A program made the translations under genes and the position numbers. From Rebecca billardiae RCC1528 (taxonomy: Eukaryota > Protista > Haptophyta), in contig OZ251223.1 of the NCBI GenBank assembly GCA_965240325.2, positions 2,976,001-3,040,000 of the forward strand: a stretch of 64,000 nt of DNA, read 5' to 3'. Numbering within the stretch: the first letter of the stretch is position 1; every line of letters begins with the position of its first letter. The notes below the pieces were generated by a model that was given only the letters and a program-made list of their open reading frames with translations, had not been told where the DNA came from and ran no database searches. Shown here piece after piece: positions 30,188-50,736 of the stretch.

Positions 30188-33100
30188 ATGCGCCTGCCCG
30201 CGTCGTTCCGCCGCTCTCGCGTCGGGGCGCTGTCGGCCACGCCGGCTGCCGAGCGCGACGCTGGGGCGCCGGCACCGGCAGAGATGGAGGAGGGCCGACC
30301 GGCCAAGCGTGTCACGTCCGGCAGGCGTGTCGCTGCCGGCTGGGTGCGAGACAAGCGCACGTGGCTGGCGCTGTTCGCGCTCCTCGTGCTTCTCGGCATC
30401 GCCGCATGGCAGCTCGCCGTGCAGGAGCTCGGCCGCCAGGCTTCCCTGAGGGAAAGCGTGCTCGCGCTCGCCGAGCTGCACGCCGCCGAGCTCGGCCGAC
30501 AGGTGCGCACATCGGTTGCCTCGTCGCTCGCGCTCGGCGCGCTCGCGCGCGCACTCGGAGATAACATCACCCTGCCCATATTCGACACGGTGGCCGCCTC
30601 GCTGATCGAGACGCACCGTGGCGTGACGAACCTGCAGCTCGCGCCGCGCGGCACCGTCCGCATGATCTACCCGCTCCGGGACGAAGACCGCCTCGCGATC
30701 GGGCACGCGCTCCTGATTGACCCCGCGCGACGTGACGGCGCCGTCGGCACGATCGAGGCCTATCCCGAGCAGCAGGCGACGGTGGCGGGCCCGCTTCGGC
30801 TGGTGCAAGGCGACATGGCGATCATCGCGCGGCACCCCGTCTTCGCGAGCCATGCCGACCCGATCCTGCAGCTCGACCCGTACTTTGTCCACCCGAAGAC
30901 GGGCGAGAATCACACGGCCGACTGCGAATCGCTCGGCGGCTGCGAGTTCGAGGGGCCGCGCGATTCGGAGGAGCGGCGCACGTACTTCTGGGGGTTCACG
31001 ACGATGCTCGCCACCGTGGACACGCTCCTCGACCCCGTCCACATCGGCCGCCTCGAGCTGCCGCACAGCTCGCTGCCCGGAGAGCTCAGCCTCGCGTGGT
31101 CGCTGCGCGCTGCCACCCCGCACCCGTCTCTCAACAGCTCGGGCGGCGTGTTCGCCTCCTCGCCGATAGACGTGGGCGCGGACGCGGTGGAGGCGCCCAT
31201 CTCGCTGCCGGACGTGGGGATTGAGTGGGTGCTCGCCGTCGCGCCTACGACCGGCTGGCCGACCACCTCAGACTCCTTCATTGTCGACCTTGCGCTCATC
31301 GGCGCGTTCACGGTCGCCGGGGCAGGCTTGCTCGCTGCGCTGCTGCTCCGTGCCGTGCGCACGGCGCACGCGCGCCGCGCCGAGGAGTTGGCGGCTCAGG
31401 CGAGCCGACACACGGAGGAGGAGCGGGTGGCGGCTGCCACGCAGGCGCGCGCGCGCCTCATCCGCACCGTGATGCACGACCTGCGCTCGCCGCTGCTCGC
31501 GTGCACCTCGATCTCGCGCTCGCTGCGCGGCCACACGCGCGAGGGCGACGCCCAGGGCACCTCGCTGCTCGACGCGCTCGCCAAGTGCATCGAGCTGATG
31601 GAGAAGATCATGTCCGACATGCTCGACTTCCAGCGCATCGAGTCGGGCCACCTCAATCTCCAGCTCGCCCCCTTCACGCCCATCGAGCTTCTCGACGGCG
31701 TGCGCGCCACCTTCGGCGAGCGCGCGGCTGAGATGGGCGTGGAGCTCGACGTCTGCGACGCGCCGCTGCCGCCCAGCGCGTGGGCCGACGCGGGCACCGT
31801 GCCGGCGCTGGTGCTGCTGCGCGGCGACAGCCGGCGGCTGCAGCAGTGCCTGAACAACGGCGTCTCCAACGCGCTCAAGTTCACCAAGGCCGGCGGCCAC
31901 GTGCGCGTGACGATGAAGCTCACGACGGCCGACGACAGGCAGCCGTCGCCCGCTGCAACGCCAGCGAGTCGTGCGGCCGCGGCCTCATCCGCGACGCACC
32001 ACGACCTCGTCTCGGACGCCGAGAGGGGTGACGGCGCCCATGCCTCGCGCACGACCGCTGCCAAGGGCAGTGCGGGTTCCTTTTTACGGACAGTGCGCCG
32101 CATGAGCGCGACGGCGGCGAGGCGCTCCCTGCCGCCGCAAGCCAACGGCGCGAGCAGCAAATCCGACGGCAGCTTTGTCCACGCGGCTGAGCCTGCTGAG
32201 TTGGTTGAGCTCGAGATCGGCGTGGTGGACGACGGCATCGGGCTAGACGCCGCCGAGCTCGCGGCGCTGAACGCGGACGAGGCCTTCACGCAGGTGCGCC
32301 TCGCGCGTGCCTCGCCACCCGCTCGGTGCTGCGCGCGGGCGCCGGCGATGGCCCCAGCACCGCGTGCGTTGACACCAAACGTCCGCGCGCCTCGCGCTCC
32401 CACGCGCGCGCTTGGCAGGTTGGTCGCGGACAACTCCAGGGCAATGGTGGCACGGGGCTTGGGCTCAATATCGTGCGACACATCCTTCGCCGCCATATGG
32501 GCTCGGAGCTGTGCCTCCACTCCGGCGGGAGGGGATGCGGCACGTCGTTTGTGATGCGCGTGCGCTGCGAAATGGTCGACAGCAGCGAGGCTGACACTCC
32601 GCCGCCCTCGCCAGCGCCTAGGACGTCGAGGGGATCGGCATCCGGGGTGACGCCAGCGCGGCGCTCGGTCAAGCTGCGTAAGCGGCAGATCTCGAGCGGC
32701 GAGGCACCGATCCGTCAGGTGTACCCCGGCTACCGCGTGCTGCACGTCGAGGACGACGCCTTCCTTCGCATGTGCGCGCACACTGCCCTGCGGCCGCTGC
32801 GCGCGCGTGTGCGAGCCCTCCGGTGGCAGTTGAGGGGCACTCGCGGGCACTCACGGGCGCCCGCCGCTGCGTGGCCCCATCCCACCTATGTCACAGGACC
32901 CTTCCATCGTCGACGTTGGACGTGATCGGCGCGAGCTACGAGCAGGCCGAGGACGGGCGGCAGGCGTGCGACCTTGTGCGCTCCGGGCAGCACTTCGACT
33001 GTGTCCTCATCGACAACCAGATGCCTGAGATGGACGGCACCGAGGCCACGGCCCAGCTGCGTGCCATGGGCTTTGCCGGCCTCATCATCGGGATGACGGG

Positions 33101-43139: not shown

Positions 43140-43187
<48 letters not shown>
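43140..43187. repeat. (TA)n microsatellite
   Basis: Uninterrupted TA run. Confidence 0.95.
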
Positions 43188-43189
<2 letters not shown>

Positions 43190-43387
43190 CGTATACCGAC
43201 GATAGGTGAGTCAGCGCGCGCGAAGTTGCATGGCACCAACAGCGTCGGCATCTAACTAATTCACCCGACACCCCCGGGCCCGCGCGGCGTGACGGACCTC
43301 ACTCCTCAGAGTGGCCCGCGGACAATGACTAGTCCGGGGAGCGGCGGCCAGCGGGCGGCCCGAGTCTGGGTCACGCGAGTCGAGGAG

Positions 43388-44101
43388 TCAGCCAGGACGT
43401 CCGCTTGTTGGAAACGCGCGCGCACTCCCACTCGCCAGAAACACGGCGCCGTGGTCACTCCCGCCCGACTTGGCCTCCGACCAGCCGCTGTTGATCGCAC
43501 CGCGGTCGCGCGAGCCCGAGAGCCCCGAGAGGTCCTCAACCATGGCGCGCTGCTGCTTTCGATGCAGCAACCGCTCGCGGCATAGCGTGCGGTGCTCAGT
43601 CAGTCGCATGCGCCGCACCTCGTGTAGCACCTCCTCCTCCCGAAGTCGCCGAGCGATCAGGGAGGCGCCGGGCCCGTCCTCCGGTAGCGGGTAGCCCCAC
43701 CACTGTGCTGGCAGGTGCGACACTCGTGCCGATGCGGAGGGCGATGTGAGATGTGCTCGCTCATACGGCATGGGCCCGGGCCAGCGCGAGTACGAGCGGT
43801 TGACCACAGATGAGAAGCTACCCTGCGGCCGATACCAGTAATACAGGAAGTCCTTCTTCGTCGCTGCCGGGTCGACAGGCCGCGCGGGTGGTGCCTTGGG
43901 GAGCAATTGCGACGGCGAGTGGTTGATCACAGGCTGCGACCATGGCGGGAACTCGACCTGGCCCGCGTGCTGCGCGTCCTGCACGGCGTACCAGAACGAC
44001 TTCACGTGCGCCTGCTCCATCCGCCCTTCTTGCGGCGTGTTGGAGAACTCGAGCACGGCACGACGGCCACGCTTGCCCGCCCCACCAGCCTCGGACGCCA
44101 T
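43388..44101 (-). CDS. Hypothetical protein (237 aa)
   Basis: ATG-initiated ORF rich in W/Y/F, unlike GC shadow ORFs; divergent from the next gene. Confidence 0.7.
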   Translation of the reverse strand: MASEAGGAGKRGRRAVLEFSNTPQEGRMEQAHVKSFWYAVQDAQHAGQVEFPPWSQPVINHSPSQLLPKAPPARPVDPAATKKDFLYYWYRPQGSFSSVVNRSYSRWPGPMPYERAHLTSPSASARVSHLPAQWWGYPLPEDGPGASLIARRLREEEVLHEVRRMRLTEHRTLCRERLLHRKQQRAMVEDLSGLSGSRDRGAINSGWSEAKSGGSDHGAVFLASGSARAFPTSGRPG

Positions 44102-44304
44102 CAGTGCAACGCGAGTGGCGCCGCCGGGGGCCCGCGTCAGGCTTCACCGCGTGGGCGCCACGCCCGGCGAAACGTGTAACGGATGTGTGGACGGATGAGA
44201 GCTGTTTGGGGCTTTGGACGCGCCCGCTTTCTTGTTAGTCAGAACCCTGCCACGTCCTCCACGACGTGACGACGCTCATCAAGGGCGAGCGCCGTCCGCA
44301 AGGA

Positions 44305-45228
44305 ATGCCACGACTCGTGCACCTCATCCACGTGCTCGCGGCATGCGCCGGCCTGCCAGGAGTCAGCGCCTTCTGGGGCTACGGCCCATTCGGCTGGAAC
44401 GGCGACACCAAGCCGCCGCCGGGTATGCCGCCAGTGCCTGGCGCTCCGCAGCCTGGCGCTCCGAATCAGGCCCCGGCTGCCGTGCAGCCCATCAGGCCGA
44501 ACCCGCCGGCAGGCGTTACGCCGCCGGCCATGTCGCCGTCGCGTGCGCAGCCCACACCCGCCCAGCCGGCCGTTCCATCGGCAGCAGCGACCCGCGCGGC
44601 AGAGGCAGCCCAAAACCAGGCGGTCGTCCACCACATCCAGCTGGGTCTGGCGTCGGCGGTGAACGAGGGGCGCTCGCGGGGCATCCCCGAGATGAGACTG
44701 GAGCAGGCCGCACAGCGCGTGTACAACCAGCGAGCAGACGTGGTGCTCACGGCCAACAAGGTGGAGGCGAGGGTGCTCAAGGCTCGCAAAGAGCAGGCGG
44801 CGCGCGAGGAGCGGCCGCCGACGCCTCTGACGCCGGTGGCGGAGCAGGCGATTCGGAATGCCGCCCTGGAGCTGGTGAGCAGCACAATGACTCTGCACGC
44901 CGTGAGTTCGCCCACTGTCGACCCACACGCCGTTCCCATCACGCAGGTGGCTGCCGTGGTCAGCGCACGCACCGGCCAGCGCACGACGCCGGAGCTGCAG
45001 CGCCTGGCGACGCAGGGAGAGGCCGGAGCGGGCAGCCCCATGCCGCTCTTCTTCGTGCTGGGCGGCCTGCTGCTCGCCGCTGCCGTCGGCACGCTCACCG
45101 TCTCGCAGGTACGCGCGCACCTCCGGCGGAAGCTCGTGGCCAAGTGGGCGAGCAGCGTCGAGGTGAGCGAGCGCGGCTCGGACAACGGGCTCGGCGAGCC
45201 ACTGGCCCGCTCGTCACTCCGCGTGTGA
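44305..45228 (+). CDS. Hypothetical type-I membrane protein
   Basis: Signal peptide MPRLVHLIHVLAACAGLPGVSA, Pro-rich segment, C-terminal TM LFFVLGGLLLAAAVGTLTV followed by basic residues. Confidence 0.75.
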   Translation: MPRLVHLIHVLAACAGLPGVSAFWGYGPFGWNGDTKPPPGMPPVPGAPQPGAPNQAPAAVQPIRPNPPAGVTPPAMSPSRAQPTPAQPAVPSAAATRAAEAAQNQAVVHHIQLGLASAVNEGRSRGIPEMRLEQAAQRVYNQRADVVLTANKVEARVLKARKEQAAREERPPTPLTPVAEQAIRNAALELVSSTMTLHAVSSPTVDPHAVPITQVAAVVSARTGQRTTPELQRLATQGEAGAGSPMPLFFVLGGLLLAAAVGTLTVSQVRAHLRRKLVAKWASSVEVSERGSDNGLGEPLARSSLRV

Positions 45229-45705
45229 GTGCCCCAAGTCTGCGTGGCCCAAGGGAGCCTCTTCTGACGCGCGTGTCGTGCGCGCGGGGTCGTGTTCTGG
45301 CTGAAGCCCCCAGCGGATCCTATTCCCAAATCTCAACCCTCTCTCGGACTGGCCGAGCCCGCAACGAGACCCGAGTGAGTGGCTGCCCGGTGCGACGAGC
45401 AATGCCGAATGCGATGGCACTGTGACTGAGTTCAGTGCGGCCCGGCACGCGGCCCGTAGTGCACGGGCTGCGCCTGCGGCTGCCCCAGGCCAGCGCTACG
45501 GGCAGCCGCAGGCTTTTGGCGTACGCAGTCGAGATCGTCACTCTGTCGCCAGTAGTAGATTCAGATTCTGAATAGAACTCTGCTCGACGGGCTCGACCGC
45601 GAAATAATCGCGAAAGTATTCAATAATATATATATATAAATATTGATCAGTGATGACTGTGGCATCTTATAATATTGCTGATGCTGCATGACCGATATTA
45701 CGGAT

Positions 45706-47940
45706 TTACGCACCCGCCGACGGTCGGAGCCCTGCGCGCAGAATAGCCGCAGCCTGTCTCGCGCCCTCCTCGGGCGAGGTCGAAGACATGGAGATTCCGG
45801 AGACAACGCGACAAACGTCGTGGTTGGCACCCACCGTCCAGCGCGCGCGCGTACATATCGCAATGTACGCGGAGAAGGTGTTCTGCCCGTTGCCTGGCCG
45901 CTCGCCAATCACGTGCACGGTTGCGCGCACGGACGAATCCGCGCTGCCCTCGCCCTCGCCCGACGCACTTGTGCCGAGCTTGTAGAGCTCGTGGCCCACC
46001 TGGTACCCGGCGCGCACGCGGCCGCGGTCGATCACGATGGTCGTGCCGTGCACGTCAACGTCGCACCTGCTGAGGCTGTCGCGCATTGTGCGCAGGAACG
46101 CGGTGCGCTGCGCGTCGTGTGCGACCGCGCGCGCATTGAGTCCGTCCGAGATGAGCACGGTCACGGCAGGGGGGCGGCCCAAGGCGGCGTACTCGAGCGC
46201 GTGCGCCCGGAGCGCCTTGAGCGAGTCCTCGTCCAGAGCCTCGCCGCGAGGGGGTGAGCGCAAGTACACCTCCCTGTCGGCTGCCTGCGAGCGCAGCACG
46301 AGCGCGCCGTCGGCCGCCAGCGCGGAGAGGAGCGGCTGCCCCAGCTCGGCGACCAGCGCTGCCTTGGCATCGTCGTAGTTGCGCAGCAGATCTGCGTGCA
46401 CGTGCGGAGGGGCGCTGAACGTGCCGTCGTGCCCGTGCCCAAGGTCCAGGCCGCGTGCCTGCAGCTTGGCGAGGATCGTCCGCGCCTCTGCGCGCAGCTC
46501 GGCGTCGGCACGCGCGTCACCCTTGGCGCGCCGGTACTGAGCGTACACATGCGCCGTGTCGCCAGCGTGCGCGCTCATGGTGCGGCCCGAGCCGTCGGCC
46601 GCCATCGCGCCCAGCCGCTCAAAGAAGGGGGACATCTCGTCGGAGACGCGCACGCCGTGCGCGTTGCGCAGCCGGGCGTGGTCACGGAAGCTCGTGGTGA
46701 TGTAGCTGAGCATGGGGTCCGACTTGCCCGCGACGGCCATCAGGTAGGCTGGCCCAGCCGGCATGACGGCGTCCATCACGGCGTCGAGCTCTGCGATCGA
46801 GACGCCCATGTGGTACGTGGAGCAGATGTCGAGGCCCATGGGCAGGCCGTGCAGCTTGCCCATCACCAGGTCCTCCAGGCACGCGCGGCGCAGCTGCTCC
46901 GCGTTGCAGAACACCTCCGGGCCGATGAACCCCGCGACATCGTTGACGATCGTCCAGTTGCCCGTGCGAACACGCAGCGCGCGCGCGAGGCCATACGAGC
47001 GTGCCTCGAGCGTGACCATGTCGACGCCCTCGGCGCACTTGTTGGTGAACTCGGAGCCCTGCCCGGTCTCAAAGTACTGGCGCCGGACGCGCGCGAGATG
47101 CTCGTGCAGCTTGCGCACGTCGACGGCGAAGGTGGCGTTGCACGACGCGGTGCCGCCGATCGATTGGAACGCGCACTCGACAGGGGCGGGCGGCTCGCCA
47201 TCTGTCGAGGCCGCGAGATCCTGCGCGCCAAGCTGGTCGTCGATGTGGCCGAGCACGCAGTACGTCGTCTTGTCCGTGAGCTCAAACGTGCGCACGACGT
47301 CCAGAAGCGTCCGCTCGAGCGCTGCGATATTGCGCCAGTCCGAGTCGACCGGGTTGACGCCGAGGACGACGTCGCCGCAGCCGTACGACAGCCCCTCGAG
47401 GACGGAGAACAGGATCTCCTCCGGGTCGTCCGTCGGCGAGTTGGGCTGGATGCGCGAGCCAAAGTAGCCGCGCGCGCCGAAGCTCGAGCCGGGCGGCGGG
47501 TTGTACACCTTCCCGCCGATGCGCACGAGCTCGGCGTCGTCGCACAGCTTGACGACGGCCGCTATCGCTTCGGAAGCGAGGCCGCCCATCATCGTGCGGA
47601 TCTCCTCGTCGGCCGCGCGAAGCAGGTGTGCCTTGAGCTCGTGCACTGTCCACGCGGCCGTCAGCTCTGCCGCACGCGGATCGATTGCAGCATCGAGCGC
47701 GTCGCTCACCTCGTCTTGGACAAAGACCCGCGAGCGCAGGTCGCCGACACGCAGCCGCTCCAGGCGCTCGCGCGCAGCACCAGCGGCCAGCTCCGATTCG
47801 GCAGCAAGGCCGATGGCCGCGTCGCCCTCCTTGAAGCGGTTGGCATTGCCAAACATGCGAAGAAGCTCATCTCGAGGCGGGAGCGCCATACCAATTGGAC
47901 CCTCTGCTCCGTCGCCGGGCGGCTGCGCGGCCATCGACAT
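45706..47940 (-). CDS. eutBC: Fused ethanolamine ammonia-lyase large+small subunit (AdoCbl-dependent)
   Basis: EutB: RIQPNSPTDDP, GCGDVVLGVNP, FQSIGG, YFETGQGS, TLEARSYG, GFIGPE, LEDLVMGKLHG, DPMLSY.TTSF.DH; EutC: DREVYLR.P..G, ISDGL, GRVRAG, IGERPG, SAYI. Confidence 0.93.
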   Translation of the reverse strand: MSMAAQPPGDGAEGPIGMALPPRDELLRMFGNANRFKEGDAAIGLAAESELAAGAARERLERLRVGDLRSRVFVQDEVSDALDAAIDPRAAELTAAWTVHELKAHLLRAADEEIRTMMGGLASEAIAAVVKLCDDAELVRIGGKVYNPPPGSSFGARGYFGSRIQPNSPTDDPEEILFSVLEGLSYGCGDVVLGVNPVDSDWRNIAALERTLLDVVRTFELTDKTTYCVLGHIDDQLGAQDLAASTDGEPPAPVECAFQSIGGTASCNATFAVDVRKLHEHLARVRRQYFETGQGSEFTNKCAEGVDMVTLEARSYGLARALRVRTGNWTIVNDVAGFIGPEVFCNAEQLRRACLEDLVMGKLHGLPMGLDICSTYHMGVSIAELDAVMDAVMPAGPAYLMAVAGKSDPMLSYITTSFRDHARLRNAHGVRVSDEMSPFFERLGAMAADGSGRTMSAHAGDTAHVYAQYRRAKGDARADAELRAEARTILAKLQARGLDLGHGHDGTFSAPPHVHADLLRNYDDAKAALVAELGQPLLSALAADGALVLRSQAADREVYLRSPPRGEALDEDSLKALRAHALEYAALGRPPAVTVLISDGLNARAVAHDAQRTAFLRTMRDSLSRCDVDVHGTTIVIDRGRVRAGYQVGHELYKLGTSASGEGEGSADSSVRATVHVIGERPGNGQNTFSAYIAICTRARWTVGANHDVCRVVSGISMSSTSPEEGARQAAAILRAGLRPSAGA

Positions 47941-48060
47941 CCCCGACCACCGCCTCGCCCGCGACGCCGCGCGCGCCACCTACTACTCCTCACGGTGAGG
48001 CTCGCTCGGACGGGGAAGGAAAATCACGATGGAGCCTCGAGCGTGAACCGAGTGCTCGCA

Positions 48061-49488
48061 ATGATGCTGCTCACGACAGCGGTCTTCTACGCGCTCGGCG
48101 TGACTTTGATGCAATGGCACACGCGTGATGTGGTGTCTGCTGAGCCGCGCTCGTTCAGCCGAGTCGTCCGCGCCATTTGCAAGCGTGGCGAGTACTGCGC
48201 AAACGGCGCGCTCTGCGAGCGACGGCTTGCAGAGATCCGTTCGGCATCCGTTGCCGCTGGGCTCACCGAAAGGCAGGCGCTGTCGATGCGCAAGCTCCTT
48301 CTGACCGAGCGTGCGTGCATGGCCACCGGTCGCGTGCGGACGCAGCCCCATCGCGCACTCGAGCTGTGTGCAGCATACGAGCGCGGCGAGTCGCTCGTTG
48401 ACCTGGCGCGCACAGCGGACATGCCACCAATCGCGCTCTTTCGCGTCGTGCTGCGCGAGCGGCATGCGAGCGACCTGAGCGTCAAGCAGTTCAAGCGTTT
48501 TGTCCAGCACGCACTGCGCCAGCCCGCGCAGGTCCTTCCCGAGCGCGACCAGCTCGAGCTCGCGCGTGCGTTCCCGGTCGACTGCGCCGCCTTCACGTCG
48601 GAGGACGACCTTTACGGCCAGCGCCGAGGGGCGTACCGGCTCGAGCGCGCCCTGCAGCATCACCTGACGGAGCACGGCGTGCGGTTTGTGACCGAGGACG
48701 AGCAGCGTGTCGCGCACGAGGCGTCGGGGGCCCCGGGCCCGCTTCTCTCCACGCCGGACATCCTGGCGAGCAGGCCGGTGCGCATCAACGGCCGGCGCGT
48801 GCACTGGCTGGACGCCAAGGCCTACTTTGGCCCAGCTGCCTTCACGAGGCAGGGGAAGCAGACCTTCCGCATGTGGCTGAAGAAGACGCGCGAGCAGGCG
48901 AAGCGGTACGACGAGCGCTTCGGTCCGGGCGCGATGGTCTTCGCCCTCGGCTACTGCACGCAGCTCGCCTCCCTTCTGCCGCAGACGCTGCTGCTCGACG
49001 CAGCGCCGGTCGGCGGCGCTGACGTCCTGGACCGGCCTGCCGACGTTGTTGTCGTGCAGCGGCCGGTGCAGCGGGCGCGACGGCGGGCGCCGCCCCGGAA
49101 AGGCGCCCCCACGCGCGAAAGCACAGCCGCCACTGGAGCATCGGCTGCTGCCTCCACGGAGAGCCCTCGGCCATCAGCAACAAGTGCCCGAGCCCATTTG
49201 CCCAACCACGTCCACGTGCCTGCGGTCACCCTCTCCCACTCCAGGAGAGCGGCCAATGCGAAAACGTCAACGGTCCCGGACATCCCTCCAACTGACCATG
49301 CTGATCCTCGTCGAGCAGGTGCGGCGGAGCGTGCTCAACGCTCTGACCTTCGTGTTGGGGGCACTCGTGACGACGACTCCTACGATGTCGTCGACGATGA
49401 TGCCGCGGGCCGCCGGGCCGCCGGGGCGGATGATGGGCATGCCAGCGGCAGCAGCCAGGCGTCAGACATTGACTACCGCCATCAATGA
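48061..49488 (+). CDS. CDIN1: CDAN1-interacting nuclease 1 (C15orf41)-like TPD-motif PD-(D/E)xK protein
   Basis: STPDIL..PVRINGRRVHWLDAKAYFG..QAKRYDERFGPGAMVFALGY; start may be Met 48109. Confidence 0.8.
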   Translation: MMLLTTAVFYALGVTLMQWHTRDVVSAEPRSFSRVVRAICKRGEYCANGALCERRLAEIRSASVAAGLTERQALSMRKLLLTERACMATGRVRTQPHRALELCAAYERGESLVDLARTADMPPIALFRVVLRERHASDLSVKQFKRFVQHALRQPAQVLPERDQLELARAFPVDCAAFTSEDDLYGQRRGAYRLERALQHHLTEHGVRFVTEDEQRVAHEASGAPGPLLSTPDILASRPVRINGRRVHWLDAKAYFGPAAFTRQGKQTFRMWLKKTREQAKRYDERFGPGAMVFALGYCTQLASLLPQTLLLDAAPVGGADVLDRPADVVVVQRPVQRARRRAPPRKGAPTRESTAATGASAAASTESPRPSATSARAHLPNHVHVPAVTLSHSRRAANAKTSTVPDIPPTDHADPRRAGAAERAQRSDLRVGGTRDDDSYDVVDDDAAGRRAAGADDGHASGSSQASDIDYRHQ

Positions 49489-50736
49489 TGACGATGACAA
49501 TAATATTAATAAATAAGGCGGCTGCGCAAGGCCTGCAGATCGACTGACGATGCCACCGACTCTTCGGAAATGTGGCGGATGATAATGTCGATAATAATGC
49601 GCTGCTGATGATGATTAAATTCGTCGAGACGATGACTCTGGATGATGACAATTACAATAATAATAATATAATTGGGAAGAATGACGCGTAGTCATTGTGA
49701 TGATGATATGACGTGTGATATGGCATTGACGTGGCAAATAACTGGCATCACGTTGGCGCCCCCCAATTCAGACGGGCGACGCGGCGGGGGAATATTGGGA
49801 ATAAATAATCATCAATAATGCGTATACATAAATGTCGGGATTTGAGCAACGAACGACAGCGGGCGCTGGCAGCGGCGTGGCGGTTGAGCTGCTGCCCGAG
49901 GTCGAGAGGGCGCCCGCGAGTCGTCAGTCACTGAGCAAGGTCGATTAAGGCTGATGGCTCGCTGACACTGCAGTGCTTCCATATCCGCCAAGAGGTCGAG
50001 GGTGGGCGGGCGGGCAAACGATGAAGCGTGCGGGTTGACGCGACAGCGGCGAGAGCAAGAGACCATTGCATGAGGGGCGACGCGGCGAAGACAGATGATG
50101 ACGTCGCGCCGCCGAACGATCAGGCGGGGAGCCGGGCCACACAGACAGCCAGCGACCTTACCGAGCAGAGGGGCTGCGGCGACTGCGGTGCACCTCCTGC
50201 AGCGGAGCGTGCACCCGGCAGTGCCCGATGCAGGCGATTCCCTTGCCCAGCTCGGCGCCTTCGTCGTGAGCAGCCCCATGGCGCCCCCGAGAGCGAAGCC
50301 TGATCGATCCGATGTGAGCGGTAACCAACCGAGTCCTGCAGGTGCGCCGCTGTGGGCCAGATTGGCAGCGCACCAGGACTCCTGCGCGCGGCGGTGCGCA
50401 CAGGACAACGCAGGAATGCCGTGCGAGCCGGATTCTTGGCGTCGCTCATAGACATTCAGTTATAGGTTCCCTATAACGCCACATATAGTGCCGCGGGATA
50501 TAACATGAATTAAATATATTATAACTACCGCTGCTGCTGATGCTGCAGCGGACTAGACCTAGTACTATGTATACCACTTCCACTGACGCCGATGATGGCC
50601 ATCAGCCGAGTCGTAGTGAGTCGTAGTATAAGTAGCTAGAGCAACTTGACAACGCCAAGAGCCGGCCTTCGGAGTCATCGTCTCCGTCGGCGCGGCGGCG
50701 GCGTTGATTGACAATCACAGACGATTGAGACGAAGA

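Follow-up and report, generated by a model that had tools for sequence, protein, structure and literature searches.

A gene on the minus strand of a 64,000-nucleotide stretch of the haptophyte Rebecca billardiae RCC1528 (GenBank assembly GCA_965240325.2, contig OZ251223.1, positions 2,976,001 to 3,040,000; hereafter the window) encodes, on one predicted polypeptide, counterparts of EutB and EutC, the large and small subunits of bacterial ethanolamine ammonia-lyase (EAL; EC 4.3.1.7), an enzyme dependent on adenosylcobalamin (AdoCbl). Sequence comparison and structure prediction support the reading of this open reading frame (ORF) as a full EutB-EutC fusion whose active site is intact, located in a genuine eukaryotic chromosome. 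We consider it likely that this is a working nuclear gene that genuinely belongs to a pavlovophyte haptophyte, that its product is a single-chain, AdoCbl-dependent EAL, and that the gene is of bacterial ancestry and has been inherited vertically.

Gene, domains and active site

The coding sequence, its parts and its 3' flank are located in the window as follows.

45706..47940, minus strand: fused EutB-EutC coding sequence, 744 codons, stop-free from ATG (47938-47940) to TAA (45706-45708), from the ORF list and its translation
46540..47889, minus strand: EutB part (large catalytic TIM-barrel subunit), residues 18-467, from Pfam and structural overlay
46495..46539, minus strand: connector, residues 468-482, the gap between the EutB and EutC structural alignments, with a predicted local distance difference test score (pLDDT) >90
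45721..46494, minus strand: EutC core (small, cobalamin-covering subunit), residues 483-740, from Pfam and structural overlay
47452-47454 (R163), 47446-47448 (Q165), 47353-47355 (N196), 47068-47070 (E291) and 46828-46830 (D371), minus strand: substrate-site codons, each checked
47854..47940, minus strand: start-codon region with candidate ATGs for M1 (47938-47940), M3, M18 (47887-47889) and M29 (47854-47856)
45555..45705, minus strand: AT-rich 3' flank after the stop, contrasting with the GC-rich coding sequence in the printed letters

An earlier note on this DNA, made from its letters alone, had described an intact, intronless ORF of 744 residues in which EutB motifs precede EutC motifs, and both observations were borne out. 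The ORF is uninterrupted by stops and, as a single frame, is collinear with bacterial homologs over 95-100% of its length; its coding DNA is 69% GC, and the protein keeps every alignment column that is invariant across 60 homologs. Pfam places EutB (PF06751) at residues 25-451, with 397.2 bits against a cut-off of 25 (E 1e-118; profile positions 5-431 of 435), followed by EutC (PF05985) at residues 515-739, with 96.6 bits against a cut-off of 25.8 (E 2e-27). The only sequences in the PDB that matched the algal protein were EAL heavy and light chains. In structural comparison, identity to the solved chains is 31-36% for EutB and 22-24% for EutC.

An AlphaFold model, built on a 60-sequence alignment of fused homologs, reached a mean pLDDT of 93 and a predicted template modeling score (pTM) of 0.91, and was poor only at residues 1-13 (pLDDT <50) and 742-744. 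Residues 18-467 of the model overlay residues 1-453 of E. coli EutB (3abo_A) with a Z score of 47.5 and a root-mean-square deviation (rmsd) of 1.9 Å over 430 aligned positions, and residues 483-740 overlay residues 62-286 of the EutC chain 7xrm_B (Z 22.8, rmsd 2.5 Å, 223 aligned). Across EutC chains overall, Z lay between 22 and 23, with TM scores of 0.74-0.75 for 3abo_B/D. The pTM, which covers the whole of this single-chain model, implies that the two folds are confidently placed relative to each other. A connector of about 15 residues stands in place of the roughly 60 N-terminal residues of free EutC, the segment that in enteric bacteria contains the peptide for targeting to the microcompartment. 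The next-best structural matches were the diol and glycerol dehydratases (Z ~19-20; PDB 1DIO, 1IWP, 1MMF), which are related radical eliminases built, like the EutB part of the algal protein, on a TIM barrel. These enzymes are nevertheless set apart from it by an identity of 13-16%, an rmsd of 3.5-4.4 Å, a different set of subunits and the absence of any match to their Pfam families in the algal sequence.

The residues R163, Q165, N196, E291 and D371 are the equivalents of Arg160, Gln162, Asn193, Glu287 and Asp362 of E. coli EutB, which are substrate-binding residues, the roles of the last four reportedly described by Shibata et al. 2010. All five are present in the algal protein and invariant in 60 of 60 fused homologs; the loss of active-site residues that the earlier note had contemplated was thus not seen. 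A critical role for Arg160 is named in the title of a paper by Sun et al. 2008, cited in PMC10440813. The same five residues occupy the substrate site of the two-subunit enzymes of E. coli, Salmonella and Listeria (PDB 3ABO, 5YSR, 7XRM, 2QEZ), whose eutB-eutC operon order is also that of the two folds in the alga. What distinguishes the algal EAL from these systems is that it is one polypeptide in a eukaryotic host, with no EutA, shell or regulator gene nearby (EutT was not clearly among the queries).

Translation most likely begins at M18, because residue 18 of the AlphaFold model pairs with residue 1 of E. coli EutB in the structural alignment and because the N-termini of the two closest relatives (P0002 and P0006) lie 12-16 residues ahead of the FKEGD motif, M18 being 17 ahead of it. 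The corresponding database protein (P0001, 716 aa), which matches the window protein at 100% from M29 onward, is modeled to begin at M29. A longer, GTG-initiated form would extend the ORF to 47979 (757 aa), and two in-frame stops lie just upstream of that codon.

Genomic context and host origin

The earlier note had placed the gene among clearly eukaryotic ones, and indeed the neighbors on both sides, across all 64 kb, are eukaryotic: Utp21/WDR36, MYCBPAP/CFAP65, a kinesin, a Ras-domain protein, a TPD-family protein, a SulP/STAS transporter and a CHASE histidine kinase, with Utp21, MYCBPAP, kinesin and TPD flanking the EAL gene. GC content lies between 55 and 77% throughout the window. A 6.7-kb Logan contig from an independent assembly (L001, run ERR14847151) is 100% identical to window positions 43163-49866 and holds the same EAL/TPD pair, which is arranged as follows.

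47941..48060, no strand: divergent intergenic region between the EAL and TPD genes (the TPD ORF is called from 48043, and its first ATG lies at about 48061)
48043..49488, plus strand: TPD gene (PF14811 family), head-to-head with the EAL gene, Pfam TPD E 4e-18

Since the divergent TPD gene starts about 120 bp away and stops precede the GTG at 47979, there is no space for an upstream targeting exon of the EAL gene.

Codon usage had been called host-like in the earlier note, and the relative synonymous codon usage of the EAL gene does fit the host (r 0.973 against six host genes, whose own leave-one-out values are 0.94-0.98). This measure is not discriminating, however, because GC-rich bacterial relatives of the EAL fit the host genes nearly as well (r 0.91-0.96); it is thus compatible with a host gene but weak evidence for one. 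More telling is a contrast in gene signals. In the algal gene, third-position GC content (GC3) is 0.86, nothing resembles a Shine-Dalgarno motif, and the 3' flank is AT-rich, probably a eukaryote-type untranslated or intergenic stretch, whereas the EAL genes of the nearest bacterial relatives have GC3 values of 0.92-0.96 and GGAGG-like motifs.

The host can be assigned to the pavlovophyte haptophytes because the window Utp21 is 65% identical to that of Diacronema lutheri (KFE25_006295), compared with 40% to that of Prymnesium, and because the Utp21-MYCBPAP interval (window 52.6-63.0 kb) is collinear with positions 1233021-1256297 of D. lutheri contig JAGTXO010000002.1 (L089); the host is nevertheless a different alga from D. 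lutheri. The D. lutheri locus that was compared ends about 1 kb past MYCBPAP, and no D. lutheri ortholog of the TPD gene was found. In two related loci (L090 and L091), the TPD gene has another divergent partner, here called gene X (L090:1-1311 and L091:196-1290, minus strand), so that the TPD-EutBC adjacency is absent there. The two copies of gene X are 69% identical, with no Pfam match on record. As the window holds nothing that corresponds to gene X, these loci offer no evidence either way for insertion of the EAL gene beside TPD.

Some further features of the window were observed. A 1030-aa ORF at 46396-49488 (plus strand) should not be taken for a single gene: over its first ~550 codons it reads through the GC-rich EAL gene in antisense, and the real TPD-family gene within it begins only at about 48043 or 48061. 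The kinesin-like gene between Utp21 and MYCBPAP had no counterpart in D. lutheri among the matches listed in a translated comparison and is therefore strongly diverged from that species. At 30188-32554 (plus strand), a 788-aa ORF combines a weak CHASE match with HisKA and HATPase_c, the layout of a cytokinin-receptor-like histidine kinase, here in a haptophyte. Neither tRNA nor Rfam matches were found in the 64-kb window.

Relatives and ancestry

That bacterial EutB-EutC fusions exist, as the earlier note had stated, was confirmed in large numbers: a database search with the algal EAL returned 4616 matches, and nearly all of the best 120 were such fusions. Bacterial single-chain enzymes from Myxococcota, Rhizobiaceae, Planctomycetota, Acidobacteriota, Bacteroidota and others resemble the algal EAL in length (~720-800 aa) and in standing alone, but the algal protein belongs to a separate 100/100 subfamily and is leaderless, whereas many of the bacterial ones carry leaders. 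In a maximum-likelihood tree, the window protein falls inside a clade of 20-21 rows with support of 100 (Shimodaira-Hasegawa-like approximate likelihood ratio test, SH-aLRT) and 100/100. The clade is separated from the remaining bacterial fusions, of which there were 16 in the careful tree and 48 in the quick tree, including named Myxococcota, Rhizobiaceae and Planctomycetota, and the algal subfamily is only 41-47% identical to these other, named bacterial fused EALs. Three branches make up the subfamily: an algal trio, six sequences in bacterial contexts and the zoosporic fungi.

The algal trio consists of the window protein, P0002 and P0006, which share 58-64% identity (58% for P0006 and 61-64% for P0002). 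Run SRR30664515, the source of P0006, also holds a Utp21 that is 56% identical to that of the window, and run SRR30872636, the source of P0002, also holds the closest relative of the TPD protein, at 51% identity. The EALs have thus diverged to about the same extent as housekeeping genes assembled from these runs, which fits vertical descent in pavlovophyte-like algae; this support is circumstantial, because either run may hold several organisms. The gene for P0006 (L084:1621-3771) lies 522 bp from one for a P4-type phospholipid flippase (L084:2-1099, minus strand; PhoLip_ATPase_N, E1-E2 ATPase), a eukaryotic protein family. Both genes of this contig concern aminophospholipids, and their proximity may be a coincidence.

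The six sequences of the bacterial branch, at 56-60% identity to the window protein, are the nearest bacterial sequences known here. Their contexts, with dense same-strand genes, Ser/Thr kinases, PEGA, CarboxypepD_reg, GmhA-like SIS_2, Cdd1 and Peptidase_M23 domains and a GC content of ~67-70%, suggest Myxococcota-like organisms. A 7.5-kb contig (L002; JADMIO011197793.1 of GCA_016307145.1) has a Myxococcota-like layout in an assembly whose contig numbers exceed 1 million; the contig itself may be bacterial while the assembly around it is non-bacterial or metagenomic. Among the matches listed from GTDB species genomes, none exceeded 45% identity to the algal EAL, and a protein atlas returned only bacterial fused-EAL clusters.

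The fungal branch holds proteins from Allomyces (A. macrogynus AMAG_03000, A. arbusculus and A. javanicus), Blastocladiella (B. emersonii and B. britannica), Catenaria anguillulae, Sorochytrium, Paraphysoderma and Gonapodya prolifera, together with three further sequences. These proteins are eukaryotic, fused and of the same subfamily as the algal EAL, to which they are 46-51% identical. Of the fungal proteins P0011-P0016, P0019, P0021, P0023 and P0124, most differ from both the algal and the bacterial enzymes in carrying Ser/Thr/Pro-rich N-terminal extensions of 35-70 residues and C-terminal extensions of 50-70 residues, exceptions being the short N-terminus of B. britannica and the short C-terminus of Gonapodya. 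With fungal fused EALs already deposited and two relatives in eukaryotic contexts (P0002 and P0006), the enzyme is not unique to one eukaryote.

A phylogeny against bacterial fused EutBC, which the earlier note had proposed, thus yields a firm subfamily that unites the alga with the fungi and the bacterial branch, but the order of the three branches stays a trichotomy at the base of the clade. The best tree joins the algae to the bacterial branch weakly (79/50), and an approximately unbiased (AU) test did not reject algae and fungi as one clade (p-AU 0.337). The tree is compatible with either one acquisition or separate acquisitions by algae and fungi. Of the horizontal transfer suggested in the earlier note, the bacterial ancestry is clear from the sequence comparisons; a recent or unique transfer into the alga is not supported by them, as the enzyme, having diverged about as much as housekeeping genes, looks old in the algal lineage.

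Proposed function, alternatives and meaning

If the algal protein works as its E. coli and Salmonella counterparts do, ethanolamine would be bound in the EutB TIM barrel, made up of the N-terminal two thirds of the chain, and the C-terminal third, the EutC core, would close over the cofactor's lower face. Homolysis of the Co-C bond would give a 5'-deoxyadenosyl radical, which would abstract a C1 hydrogen from ethanolamine; migration of the amino group and release of acetaldehyde and ammonia would follow. The substrate might come from phosphatidylethanolamine turnover or from uptake from seawater, and the products could be used in the cytosol as nitrogen and a C2 unit. From such comparisons we infer catalysis, cofactor, location, physiological role and timing of acquisition, and the scavenging of nitrogen from ethanolamine can reasonably be proposed. 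Eukaryotes usually convert ethanolamine to acetaldehyde and ammonia through ETNPPL (ethanolamine-phosphate phospho-lyase), a pyridoxal phosphate-dependent enzyme of unrelated fold that acts on phosphoethanolamine and does not need B12; the net products are the same.

As queries against the window, 309 ORFs were taken from a set of 12 classical eut operons, among them an annotated operon (L083) encoding EutA, three microcompartment shell proteins, a EutE-type aldehyde dehydrogenase, a EutG-type alcohol dehydrogenase and EutV/W. No other eut gene was found in the 64 kb, all 16 matches falling inside the EutBC ORF. The earlier note's statement that the window lacks eutA, eutT and microcompartment genes therefore holds for EutA and the shell genes; EutT was a less clear case, for the reason given above. 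Such absences are not evidence against function, because bacterial fused EALs lack EutA and shell neighbors too: no conserved neighbor was seen in 39 of their loci, and the flanks were unrelated in five loci from different phyla. Judged by its gene neighborhoods, the EutB-EutC fusion is a stand-alone enzyme wherever it is found.

Many of the bacterial enzymes may be exported. A twin-arginine-type motif followed by a hydrophobic stretch occurs at the N-terminus of 46 of 104 bacterial fusions, a count based on the starts predicted by a gene caller; P0051, P0046, P0036 and P0052 are examples among P0003-P0120, and some sequences also have a lipobox-like Cys. In the bacterial branch closest to the alga, the six sequences have a hydrophobic N-terminal stretch (Kyte-Doolittle 1.81-3.27), and one also has an RR motif. 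These features suggest that many bacterial fused EALs are exported, periplasmic AdoCbl enzymes. If the leaders are real export signals, a single chain would suit the export of a folded, cofactor-loaded enzyme; no literature linking EAL with twin-arginine (Tat) export was found. The algal trio, by contrast, shows neither a leader nor a long N-terminal extension, and its C-terminus, a conserved LRPSxGA end, is not like a type 1 peroxisomal targeting signal (PTS1). Because signal, transit and presequence-like extensions are all absent, the algal EAL is probably cytosolic.

Several observations weigh against a working EAL in this alga. The curated NCBIfam cut-offs were missed for both subunits (466.7 of 554 bits for EutB, NF011649, and 65.1 of 230 bits for EutC, NF003971); these are annotation thresholds tuned to free-standing subunits rather than biochemical criteria, and missing them marks the algal protein as a divergent member of the EAL family. 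The ratio of nonsynonymous to synonymous substitution rates (dN/dS) is 0.28-0.36 within the algal trio, but dS, at ~0.9-1.35 and constrained by GC3 bias, is near saturation, so that the ratio is weak evidence. EAL is prone to mechanism-based inactivation, and since no EutA reactivase lies within the 64-kb window, sustained turnover is uncertain. Eukaryotes normally make AdoCbl inside mitochondria, and an EAL in the cytosol would therefore need a cofactor route. Finally, D. lutheri, the closest annotated relative, has no annotated EutBC among the database matches, and the gene is either non-universal in the pavlovophyte group or present but unannotated in that species.

It is conceivable, though unlikely, that the EAL fold was kept and its function changed, the protein acting on another amino alcohol (such as 2-amino-1-propanol or a headgroup-derived amine) or serving chiefly to bind or store cobalamin. 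The missed NCBIfam equivalog cut-offs would allow for this, as would the modest identities to named bacterial fusions (41-47%) and solved EutB chains (31-36%) and the fact that no characterized member of the subfamily was found in the literature. Retention of the ethanolamine reaction is favored by the five ethanolamine-contacting positions, all invariant, and by a barrel that overlays E. coli EutB at 1.9 Å. Moreover, a modest shift of substrate would not make a different kind of enzyme, as E. coli EAL already accepts 2-amino-1-propanol according to the title of PDB entry 5ysr.

Somewhat harder to sustain is a recent, species-specific transfer from bacteria that only seems settled. The weak pairing of the algal trio with the bacterial branch, the intronless gene and the absence of the TPD-EutBC adjacency in L090 and L091 all agree with it, but the two orthologs in eukaryotic contexts have diverged by 36-42%, about as much as the housekeeping genes of the same runs, and the nearest bacterial sequences are just 56-60% identical. 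The intronless state is not distinctive, given that the host Utp21 and SulP genes are also single ORFs. An unexpressed or decaying relic, still intact by chance, is a slightly poorer candidate again. The lack of accessory eut genes nearby would be in keeping with decay, yet all 744 codons are open in 69% GC DNA, every column invariant in the 60 homologs is kept, dN/dS is below 0.4 and the LRPSxGA end is conserved in the trio. Bacterial contamination or a chimeric assembly, which an overwhelmingly bacterial family and a GC content like that of the Myxococcota-like relatives might bring to mind, is highly improbable. The EAL gene sits well inside the 64 kb, eukaryotic genes occur to its left and right, and its head-to-head partner ~120 bp off is a TPD gene, of a family confined to eukaryotes. 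The same junctions recur in an independently assembled contig, GC3 is below that of the bacterial relatives, a ribosome-binding motif is missing and, a few kb away, the region is collinear with D. lutheri.

A vertically inherited, functional EAL in pavlovophytes would extend the accepted list of eukaryotic B12 enzymes. Surveys list MetH, methylmalonyl-CoA mutase and class II ribonucleotide reductase only, with EAL as prokaryotic (PMC2667541, PMC7435645), in agreement with the earlier note. A 2021 study of cobalamin use in early-diverging fungi (PMC8085122) never mentions ethanolamine, EutB or EAL, even though Blastocladiomycota carry the EutB-EutC fusion. Searches for papers or bioRxiv preprints on EAL in any eukaryote (fungal, protist, algal, haptophyte or microalgal) returned bacterial work only, so that the prior algal reports that the earlier note had allowed for were not found. 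The novelty is nonetheless limited: automated database entries for fungal EALs have existed for years, and the enzyme family is thoroughly known. The algal EAL would enlarge the picture of B12 physiology in algae but does not amount to a new type of system.

More tentatively, as a proposal for which we claim something short of even confidence, single-chain EAL could be an overlooked fourth kind of eukaryotic B12 enzyme, kept in pavlovophytes and zoosporic fungi and derived from an often-exported bacterial form, which would have lost its export leader and would now work in the cytosol with neither reactivase nor microcompartment. Haptophytes are known as a B12-auxotrophic group, and Droop's classic studies of B12 limitation reportedly used the pavlovophyte Diacronema (Monochrysis) lutheri. 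For an alga of this B12-requiring group, an AdoCbl-dependent EAL would give access to nitrogen from ethanolamine and phosphatidylethanolamine, and would create a second requirement for the vitamin, this one for its adenosyl form. By what path AdoCbl gets to an enzyme in the cytosol is a question that would then arise; if the proposal is true, adenosylcobalamin would have to be supplied outside mitochondria, and membrane-lipid turnover and nitrogen scavenging would be tied to B12 availability in B12-dependent phytoplankton.

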